A stretch of 39,656 bases of DNA from assembly GCF_001194135.2 (NCBI RefSeq), contig NC_069001.1, positions 37,183,872 through 37,223,527 of the forward strand, read 5' to 3'. Origin of the DNA: Octopus bimaculoides. Taxonomy: Eukaryota. The notes below the pieces were generated by a model that ran no database searches, was not told the DNA's origin, and saw nothing but the letters and a program-made list of their open reading frames with translations. Made by a program: the position numbers and the translations under genes. Of this stretch, positions 20,559-23,509 are shown piece by piece (positions within the stretch are counted from its first letter, which is position 1; every line of letters begins with the position of its first letter).

Positions 20559-23509
20559 TTATGATTTCTCTCCAGTAGGAATGCATTTGTGTGTTATTAA
20601 GTAACTACTTCGAGAAAATGATTTACCACAGATATCACAGTGATATGGTTTTTCCCCAGTATGGGTACGCATATGTTTACTTAATAGACTTGCTAGAGCA
20701 AATGATTTGCCACAGATATCACAGAGATATGGTTTCCCTCCAGTATGAACATATTTGTGAGTAGTCAAGTGACCTCTTCTAGCAAATGATTTACCACAGA
20801 TATCACAGTGATATGGTGTGTCTCCTGTGTGAATAAATTTGTGAGTAGTTAAGTCACTACTTTTACAAAATGATCTACCACAGATATCACAGTGATATGG
20901 TTTCTCTCCTGTATGAATGCGTACATGTNNNNNNNNNNNNNNNNNNNNNNNNNNNNNNNNNNNNNNNNNNNNNNNNNNNNNNNNNNNNNNNNNNNNNNNN
21001 NNNNNNNNNNNNNNNNNNNNNNNNNNNNNNNNNNNNNNNNNNNNNNNNNNNNNNNNCTACCACAGATATCACAGTGATATGGTTTCTCTCCTGTATGAAT
21101 GCGTACATGTATAGTTAATTTACAATTTGAAATGAATGATTTACCACAAATATCACAAGCATATGGTTTCTCTCCAGTATGTGTGCGTTTGTGTATAATT
21201 AAAGCATTACTATGAGAGAAGGATTTACCACAGATATCACAATGATGTGGTTTCTCCCCAGTATGAATGCGTTTGTGCTTAGTTAAATCACCAGTTCGAG
21301 AGAATGATTTACCACAAATATCACAGTGATAGGGCTTCTCACCTGTATGAATGCATTTATGTATAATTAAGGCAGCTCTATGACAGAATGATTTATCACA
21401 CACATCACATGGATATGGTTTGTCTCCTGTATGAATAAATTTGTGTTTTGTTAAATTACCACTGAAAGAGAAAGATTTACCACACACATCACAGTGATAT
21501 GGCTTCTCTCCTGTATGAGTGCGCTTGTGTATATGTAAGCTACCACTTGTAGAAAATGATTTACCACAGATATCACAATACGGCTTCTCTCCATTATGAC
21601 TTCGTTTGTGATTAGTTAAGAGATTTCTATTAGTGAATGATTTATCACAAATAGTACATGAATATGGCTTCTTGCCTGTATGAATAAGTTTGTGAGTAGT
21701 AAAGTCATTATTTCCAGAGAATGACTCACCACAGATATTGCAGTGATATTGCCTGCCCACTGTATGAATTCGTTTGTGCATAGTTAAGACATTTTTCCGA
21801 GAGAATGATTTACTACAGATATCACAATGATATGGCTTCTCTCCTGTGTGAATTCGTTCGTGTGTAGTTAAGACATCTCCACGGGAGAATGACTTACCAC
21901 ACACATCACAGCAATGTGGCTTCTTGCCTGTATGAATTCGTTTGTGAGTAGTTAAATTACTCCTTGCAGTGAAGGATTTACCACAAATATCACAGTGATA
22001 TGGCTTTTCTCCTGTATGTGTACGTATGTGGATAGTTAAGTTACGACTTTGTAAAAATAATTTACCACAAATGTCACAATGATATGGCTTCTCAGCCCTG
22101 TGACTCCGTTTGTGTATAGTCAAGGCATTTCTATGCGAGAATGATTTACCACAGATATAACAGTGATATAAATTATCTCCTGTATGAATGCGTTTGTGTT
22201 TATTTAAGCTACTACTAGTAGTGAAAAATTTACCACAGCTTTCACAATGAAATGGTTTTTCTCCAGTATGAATCCTTGTGTGTTGAGTTATGGCATTTCT
22301 ATCAGTGAATGATTTATTGCAAATAGCACATGAATATGGCTTCTCTCCTGTATGAATACGTTTGTGAATAGTTAGAGTTCCTGTTCCAGAAAATGATTTA
22401 CCACAGATATCACAGCGATATGGCCTTTCCCCCGTATGAATACGTGTATGTACATTTAAAGACCCTGTTCCAGAGAATGATTTACCACAGATATCACAGC
22501 GATGAGGTTTCTCACCTGTATGTATACGTTTGTGAGTATTTAAATTGCTACTTCCAGAGAATGATTTACCACATATATCACAGTGATATGGCTTCTCACC
22601 TGTATGAACACGCTTGTGTTTATTCAAGTCACTACTTGTAGAGTAGGATTTACCACAGATATCGCAGTGAAATGGTTTTTCTCCAGTATGAATGCGTTTG
22701 TGTTTAGTTAAATCTTGATTTCGAGAGAATGATTTACCACAGAAATTACAAGAATATGGTCTTACTCCTGTATGAATGCTTTCATGAAATGTCAAGTGAA
22801 TTTTTTGAGAGAAGGATTTCCCACAGACTTCACAGTGATATGGCTTCTCTCCTGTGTGTATGATTTTGTGTCTTGTTATATCAGCTGTTGCAGAGAATGA
22901 TTTACCACAGATATCACAATCATATGGCTTCTCTCCTGTGTGAATGATTTTATGTGCAGTTAAGTGACTTGTTGTACAGAAAGATTTACTACAAACATCA
23001 CAATGATATGGTTTTTCTCCTGTATGAATGATTTTATGTGAAGTTAAGTGTCCTTTTGTGGAAAACGATTTACCACAGACTTCACAGTGATATGGCTTCT
23101 CTCCAGTATGAGTGCGTTTATGTACGGTCAAGGGAGTTTTGTTAGAGAATGACTTGCCACAGATATCACAATGATATGGCTTCTCTCCTGTATGTGTGCG
23201 TTTGTGAACAGTTAGGGCACTTTTGTTAGAGAATAACTTACCACAGATATGACAATGATATGGTTTGTCTCCTCTATCGATAGTACTGTGAGCAGTTATA
23301 GGATTTGTTTGAGAGATTGATATGCTAAAGATATCATTATGGTAAGCTCTTTCTCTTGTCTCTTGCAGAGGACCATCTGGAAAATCAATTCTTTCAAACT
23401 CTGTTTTAATTTTAATTGGTGTCTCACATACTTCATTTTTAATTATAATCGGTCTCTCACATAATTCATTTTTAATTACAATTGGTGTCTCATGTAATTC
23501 ATTTTCCAT
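20559..23509 (-). CDS. C2H2 zinc-finger array protein C (30 units, last one broken; ~922 aa)
   Basis: 54 bp on each side of the gap are identical (20875-20928 = 21057-21110). Collapsing 182 nt gives 2769 nt in frame, ending ...[18 protein letters not shown]. The resulting finger order is collinear with gene D fingers 33-37. Confidence 0.92.

Follow-up and report, generated by a model that had tools for sequence, protein, structure and literature searches.

How can a zinc-finger protein that lacks a KRAB domain silence the sites to which it binds? Tetrapod C2H2 zinc-finger proteins (ZNFs) use the KRAB-KAP1/TRIM28-SETDB1 pathway, in which SUMO-dependent recruitment brings the H3K9 methylation machinery to the ZNF-bound site. 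The expansion of C2H2 zinc-finger genes in octopus genomes ranks among the largest known, and a 39,656-nt stretch of the Octopus bimaculoides genome (hereafter, the window) holds four such genes, A to D, arranged in tandem on the minus strand and spaced ~10 kb apart. The encoded proteins begin with a short leader in which an 11-residue unit occurs one to three times, ending each time in the SUMO consensus psi-K-x-E. Here, we report that psi, Lys and Glu have been selectively retained within these arrays, that the leader appears to belong to a previously undescribed, Octopus-restricted family, and that it may serve as a SUMO-acceptor effector. Wells et al. (2023, PMC10547256) name the means by which expanded non-KRAB ZNF families repress their targets as an open question.

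Repeat units and SUMO consensus sites

Directly after the initiating Met, the genes carry in-frame 33-bp units: two in A, one in B, and three each in C and D. The 11-residue unit has the consensus NELCETPIIIK, the last copy is closed by KTE, and psi-K-x-E is found at nine of nine unit ends when each is read on into the following unit or the terminal KTE. The reading frame is kept across all nine units. Tandem Repeats Finder detects a period of 33 in gene C (23404-23505, 3.1 copies, 86% matches) and in gene D (32972-33073, 3.1 copies, 77% matches). Minus-strand translation, together with these repeat calls for C and D, reproduces the copy numbers, positions and nine motif readings of the original prediction, an annotation made from the letters of the window. 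Gene B, with one unit and an intact first finger, has the ancestral-like layout. The units and sites are listed below.

23408-23506, minus strand: gene C, three 33-bp units (ATG at 23509-23507, closing KTE at 23407-23399)
23465-23476, minus strand: gene C site 1, IKNE, residues 12-15, preceded by IVI and followed by LCE
23432-23443, minus strand: gene C site 2, IKNE, residues 23-26, preceded by III and followed by VCE
23399-23410, minus strand: gene C site 3, IKTE, residues 34-37
32976-33074, minus strand: gene D, three 33-bp units (ATG at 33077)
33050-33039, 33011-33000 and 32978-32967, minus strand: gene D sites IKIE (in a shifted register), IKNE and IKTE
1747-1812, minus strand: gene A, two 33-bp units, with sites IKSE (1782-1771) and IKTE (1749-1738)
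13805-13837, minus strand: gene B, single 33-bp unit, with site IKTE (13807-13796)

Compared with composition-preserving shuffles of the pre-finger region, psi-K-x-E is overrepresented in gene A (2 vs 0.10, P=0.003), gene C (3 vs 0.17, P=0.0006) and gene D (3 vs 0.35, P=0.003); the site in gene B is not significant alone (1 vs 0.16, P=0.15). Because all nine sites derive from a single unit by copying, nine of nine does not amount to nine independent events, and retention of the motif provides the fairer test.

The proline-flanked synergy-control motif had also been invoked for the sites, a reading that does not hold in its strict form. The synergy-control motif, reportedly defined by Iniguez-Lluhi and Pearce in 2000, is said to read P-x(0-4)-[IV]-K-x-E-x(0-3)-P; none of the nine units matches it, and three of nine match when x(0-4) is allowed downstream. 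As in synergy-control motifs, seven of nine octopus units have an upstream Pro, located two residues before psi, but the downstream Pro lies four residues after Glu and is thus one residue too far for the strict pattern. By the extended SUMO-motif definitions of PMC3816760, five of nine units carry a hydrophobic triplet before the Lys (VVI, III, IVI, III and III), corresponding to the hydrophobic-cluster (HCSM) type. An acidic residue two positions after the core, as in the downstream-acidic (NDSM) type, is likewise present in five of nine (A1, A2, C1, C2 and D2), and in the other four it is found at spacing 1.

Other short motifs were sought in the same region. No unit matches either core of a SUMO-interacting motif (SIM), [VIL][VIL]x[VIL] or [VIL]x[VIL][VIL], the sole matches being IIGI in the decayed finger of A and D described below. 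The HP1-binding motif PxVxL, searched as P-x-[VI]-x-[LIMV], is absent from every leader, and inspection of the leaders shows no CtBP motif of the PxDLS type. The absence of KRAB, SCAN, BTB and ZAD domains from these proteins, which had been asserted at the outset, was borne out by Pfam: full-length D matches C2H2-type families only, and the four N-termini match nothing. In an AlphaFold2 model of gene B computed from a 15-sequence alignment, the first finger reaches a predicted local distance difference test (pLDDT) score of 70-79, and residues 1-30 are coil at 45-48. A single-sequence model of gene D also shows the leader as coil (pLDDT 39-62); its fingers score low too, making this run uninformative. 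These models are compatible with a disordered leader that would be accessible to enzymes, with the caveat that low pLDDT is no proof of disorder.

The predicted start codons lie at 1815 (A), 13840 (B), 23509 (C) and 33077 (D), and in all four genes an in-frame TAA occurs 27-33 nt upstream. For gene D, the NCBI gene call is identical to the 1145-residue open reading frame (ORF). Together, the upstream TAA and the matching gene call indicate that the repeat is the true N-terminus. A polypyrimidine-CAG is common to all four genes 160-330 nt upstream of the ATG; similarity between the paralogs begins there, which suggests that it is the acceptor of an intron in the 5' untranslated region (UTR). 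With such an acceptor, the leader would be encoded in the same exon as the fingers. The putative acceptors are located as follows.

23756-23758, minus strand: gene C, ttatttCAG/AATAC, 246 nt upstream of the ATG
1978-1980, 14172-14174 and about 33398-33400, minus strand: equivalents in genes A, B and D, respectively

A candidate acceptor of this kind is what might be expected if the repeat were an annotation artefact, with another start or an untranslated exon being used in its place. We consider this exceedingly improbable. In addition to the upstream stops and the frame preserved in all nine units, the ORFs run uninterrupted from the start codon into as many as 38 fingers, and independent RefSeq models of relatives in three Octopus species begin at the same MENELCE.

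Retention of the motif and the Octopus leader family

Between any two units, 4-13 of the 33 nt are different, and units of different genes pair weakly by position (A1-C1, A2-C3, C2-D2 and C3-D3). From this divergence and pairing, the array is at least as old as the gene duplications in the cluster, for which synonymous divergence (dS) is about 0.3. There are 35 substitutions from the unit consensus, and only three fall in the nine psi, K and E nucleotides, where 9.5 are expected. In a test that assumes a star phylogeny and uses columns picked after the data were seen, a single change breaks the motif, compared with 5.5-5.9 expected (P=0.005-0.011 for transition/transversion ratios of 1-4). Psi, K and E are the least substituted positions of the unit; L, E and P are also fairly conserved, and free variation is seen at x and at unit position 9 (I/V/K/P). 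The Ile at psi is coded by ATT, ATA or ATC, indicating that the codon has mutated and the residue has been kept. Psi, K and E have thus been selectively retained within the arrays, and the expectation of retention against drift, raised by the original prediction, was upheld at this level.

A search of 1.84 billion cluster representatives with a profile built from the four N-termini found about 18 proteins that match at their own N-terminus. Those with a named source all derive from O. bimaculoides, O. sinensis or O. vulgaris, and the remainder comprise one Logan sample and one partial fragment from ENA. Further paralogs were taken from six loci around the matched genes (among L002-L010), giving a sample of about 20 leaders out of many hundreds of Octopus ZNFs. 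The sequences share a box of ~35 residues, MENELCEN..K.K.Q...IDFPD...GKTSY, immediately before the first finger. We define members of the family by ME.EL[CFYW]E at Met1, [IV]DFPD ~20 residues in, and a first finger directly after. Gene B fits this box over its full length, and in A, C and D it is split by the duplicated unit and then followed by a decayed first finger. Judged by these sequence searches, the box appears to be previously undescribed and restricted to Octopus.

The 18 other Octopus leaders sampled each contain a single unit. Since these relatives share the common box, a part of a leader found across the genus was duplicated in tandem locally, in the window cluster, and arrays of two to three units were seen only there. 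Across 18 genes, conservation is highest at M1, E2, E4, L5, C6, F21 and the DFPD box; columns 10-15, where the motif lies, are variable. Neither MENELCE nor [IV]DFPD matched a known motif. Cys6 is present in 12 of 18 aligned leaders, and many have a second Cys at position 12, giving a C-x5-C spacing.

At least one psi-K-x-E occurs in 11 of the 18 leaders, a number that none of 5000 shuffles reached and that exceeds the shuffled mean of 3.0+/-1.6 by ~3.5-fold, with the qualification that these tests leave relatedness out of account. None of the control patterns psiExK, psiKxK, KpsixE, psiKxD and psiRxE is enriched in these leaders, and the enrichment of psiExE is due solely to the invariant M-E-x-E start. 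The proposal that K and E at the junction would be both enriched and conserved across the wider family is therefore supported in its first part and fails in its second, the motif being absent from 7 of 18.

The position of the site bears on the sole motif break, a K-to-E change in D1 that yields IKIE two residues earlier and had been taken as compensatory. Seven of the 18 leaders carry the motif in the register psi10-K11-x12-E13, which is that of IKIE (four leaders have a second site after DFPD), and the register psi12-K13-x14-E15 is found only in the window cluster. Moreover, IKIE is one AAA>GAA step from the PIKIK of C3 and D3. As IKIE lies in a common family register and a single step from PIKIK, compensation is not required to explain it.

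The leader box marks only a subfamily of Octopus ZNFs, as there is a second, unrelated leader class (e.g., MEKSEKLQELI...). This class, ME[KR]S[EK]K[LI].ELI...E.MIKE..., is represented by P0004, P0008 and P0015 from O. sinensis or O. vulgaris and is also followed directly by the first finger. A syntenic orthologous cluster was not found in O. sinensis or O. vulgaris. Three word-indexed homologue searches contributed little: the gene C N-terminus gave no candidates in a patchy index, an 18-sequence leader profile recovered 2 proteins from 65 candidates and missed members of its own query, and residues 1-336 of D retrieved mainly generic vertebrate ZNFs; none of these outcomes is evidence of absence.

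Possible function of the leader and competing explanations

We tentatively favor a role for the leader as a SUMO-acceptor effector, which, based on its sequence features, we regard as a real possibility that falls somewhat short of an even chance. Tandem duplication of an 11-residue stretch of the leader has given A, C and D two to three lysines, each in a strong SUMO consensus. Under this model, the protein would be brought to DNA by its fingers, and Ubc9 would attach SUMO to the leader lysines. SUMO could then recruit co-repressors with SIMs, such as SETDB1 or NuRD-type complexes, and more units would mean more SUMO per bound molecule. We infer conjugation, recruitment, repression and dose dependence by analogy with characterized systems. 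By the same analogy, the array would be a compact tandem form of the established SUMO-consensus repression motifs of transcription factors.

The closest parallels are human repression domains that contain SUMO sites, such as SP3 (IKEE) and a tile of MGA. In a preprint by DelRosso et al. (doi 10.1101/2022.08.26.505496), 149 of the 166 human repression domains containing psi-K-x-E depended on it for their activity, and a 10-residue MGA tile with IKEE was sufficient for repression. Like these, the octopus leader presents a short psi-K-x-E, one that calls for no folded domain, in a predicted disordered region of a DNA-binding protein, and IKNE, IKTE, IKSE and IKIE match the human pattern, with hydrophobic-cluster and downstream-acidic extensions. 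It differs in that the site sits in an exactly periodic 11-residue array at the extreme N-terminus of a mollusc protein, with a copy number that varies among paralogs.

Invertebrate precedent for SetDB1-linked repression that needs SUMO on the N-terminal or disordered region of a chromatin-targeted protein comes from the Drosophila proteins Bonus and Panoramix (the latter cited in PMC9890238). Bonus cannot support such repression without its one N-terminal SUMO site (PMC10672805). Unlike the octopus proteins, neither is a sequence-specific polydactyl ZNF or contains a periodic repeat, and Bonus has one site. The proposed end point is the same as that of the KRAB-KAP1/TRIM28-SETDB1 pathway, but the octopus proteins have no KRAB domain and would themselves carry the SUMO that in the KRAB pathway is borne by an adaptor.

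FiNZ, a 28-residue Glu-rich N-terminal box on cyprinid ZNFs whose mechanism is stated to be unknown (PMC10547256), is comparable in kind, being short, Glu-rich, lineage-restricted, N-terminal and found on a massively expanded non-KRAB family. FiNZ occupies its own exon and no tandem duplication of it is reported, whereas the octopus leader appears to share a coding exon with the fingers. The same study treats octopus ZNFs only as finger arrays, with no octopus N-terminal motif and no SUMO, and a 2025 study of cephalopod C2H2 expansions mentions neither N-terminal motifs nor SUMO (PMC12513265). Literature searches on cephalopod zinc fingers and SUMOylation returned nothing relevant, and none linked FiNZ to SUMO.

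Multiple psi-K-x-E motifs before the fingers are not peculiar to octopus. We found ten in P0033, a 1008-residue non-KRAB ZNF that is possibly from fish, and six VKxE in an Aplysia protein. The suggestion that the octopus array stands in place of a KRAB domain consequently adds little, as fish and Aplysia ZNFs without KRAB commonly have several pre-finger copies. P0033, P0158 (Aplysia), P0065, P0066, P0110, P0118 and others, including one from an eel, carry 4-10 pre-finger copies, often as [IV]K.EP. Motif density in such non-KRAB polydactyl ZNFs is 1.2-3 per 100 residues, compared with a median of 0.23 among 228 proteins.

A number of observations weigh against a SUMO-acceptor role, beginning with the assumptions of the retention test noted above. 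The site is not fixed, given the 7 of 18 leaders that lack it, and arrays of at least two units were not found among the 18 leaders outside the window cluster. The seven leaders with no psi-K-x-E include those of three tandem O. vulgaris paralogs (L002 4059, 10001 and 16461, plus strand; OX597834.1). Their leaders are near-identical (MMEDKLCENKV[IT]CKTQSTS.GFPAGVK.QKDK) and conserve MMEDKLCENKVICKTQS, so a motif-less leader has been kept through duplications. Taken with the other motif-less leaders, this indicates that the family does not require a SUMO site. Family-wide, MENELCE and IDFPD are at least as conserved as the motif site. The ratio of nonsynonymous to synonymous substitution (dN/dS) is 0.77-1.06 in the pre-finger region, near neutrality, vs 0.26-0.34 in the first eight fingers, and any constraint on the leader must therefore be limited to a few residues. 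Finally, SUMO motifs were not enriched in a Drosophila repression-domain screen (PMC9890238).

Several of these points would follow naturally if the leader were a low-complexity, near-neutral segment with no specific role, in which an ancestral IKTE was copied by 33-bp replication slippage within a K/E/I-rich N-terminus. Such an origin fits the pre-finger dN/dS, the copy numbers of 1/2/3/3 among paralogs without arrays in 18 relatives, the motif-less leaders and the brevity of psi-K-x-E, which is also carried by 12.3% of inactive human tiles (doi 10.1101/2022.08.26.505496). It accounts poorly for units that are old and yet show one breaking change where about 5.7 would be expected, or for the enrichment of the motif, and not of the control patterns, in relatives; we consider it unlikely, if worth serious attention. 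We assign a comparably low likelihood to the idea that the leader is an effector acting through some other motif or modification. Candidates are docking of a co-factor by MENELCE or [IV]DFPD, contacts or oligomerization through I-x-I-K strands, and ubiquitin or acetylation of the lysines. The conservation of M1, E2, E4, L5, C6, F21 and DFPD over columns 10-15 speaks for this, as do the fairly conserved L, E and P of the unit and the persistence of motif-less leaders in the tandem O. vulgaris paralogs. In the cluster, however, the duplicated part carries the Lys motif and not the DFPD box, and the leader has no PxVxL in any unit, no visible PxDLS-type motif, no Pfam family and no confident secondary structure.

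The Ile and Val runs raise the further idea that the units are themselves SIMs and that the array binds SUMO non-covalently. Runs of III, VVI and IVI flanked by Glu do occur in five of nine units. The absence of either four-residue SIM core from all nine, K or P at the middle position in four of nine, and the invariance or near invariance of I(-1), K and E(+2) make this very unlikely. As an extension of the SUMO-acceptor model, we speculate that the leader is a self-contained, KAP1-independent silencing module in which unit number is an evolvable dial of repression strength, and that IIGIS.SE in A and D may add SUMO-SIM multivalency that clusters bound sites; we view this extended version as doubtful.

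If the SUMO-acceptor model is correct, direct SUMO tagging of a DNA binder can replace the KRAB-KAP1 adaptor, and effector strength can evolve through changes in repeat number. A leader with an enriched and locally duplicated SUMO consensus thereby offers a specific hypothesis on how a very large non-KRAB ZNF expansion could repress its targets. Should the SUMO reading fail, the box would still mark an Octopus ZNF subfamily and be useful for annotation.

Finger arrays and surrounding sequence

Downstream of the repeat, the cluster genes share an acidic linker, E[RD]I[DAG]F[PH][ND], conserved right after the last unit. In A, C and D, this is followed by a decayed first finger in which both Cys are replaced, mostly by Ile or Ser, and in C the second His is replaced as well. 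The first finger is intact in gene B and in all other members of the leader family. The finger remnant of A and D has the sequence IIGIS.SE, in which a SIM core precedes Ser/Glu. Profile positions 50-85, considered as a possible new domain, were rejected: they match ordinary fingers of unrelated ZNFs because the stretch is a decayed zinc finger.

23372-23398, minus strand: gene C, acidic linker FERIDFPDG, which carries the [IV]DFPD box
23261-23344, minus strand: gene C, degenerate first zinc finger with both Cys and the second His lost (by-eye alignment)
32829-32912 and 1600-1683, minus strand: equivalents of the degenerate first finger in D and A, respectively
20849-23260, minus strand: gene C, C2H2 finger array with an 84-bp period, interrupted by a 128-N assembly gap (20929-21056)

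The gene D ORF occurs verbatim on chromosome CM046621.1 of GCA_001194135.2 at ~37.2 Mb; the exact protein is absent from the clustered protein collection. At the end of this ORF (29640-29660), a stop falls directly after an HTGEKP linker, truncating the last finger, and several finger linkers of gene D are short by one residue. Gene A extends past the start of the window.

The window is AT-rich (GC content 0.23-0.41) and includes nine assembly gaps of N runs. One of these, a 10-N gap in gene B (13464-13473), has the same 33 nt (acacaggggagaagccatattactgtgaaatct) on both sides within 13431-13510. The duplicate probably reflects a scaffolding overlap, and an assembly artefact is the likely source of the apparent frameshift in gene B.

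The stretch at 6063-6230 contains ~70 bp of degenerate (TTAGGG)n and, after it, CCCTAA-type sequence, with the arms of a ~25-bp inverted repeat (cagattaaaacccgcacgatcttca / tgaagatcgtgcgggtgttaatctg) on either side. This region looks like a foldback element or one resembling a miniature inverted-repeat transposable element (MITE), with telomere-type repeats. A second short run of GTTAGG is located at 36853-36878, and the intergenic segment 36956-37148 contains two copies of a 95-bp unit with 87% matches.

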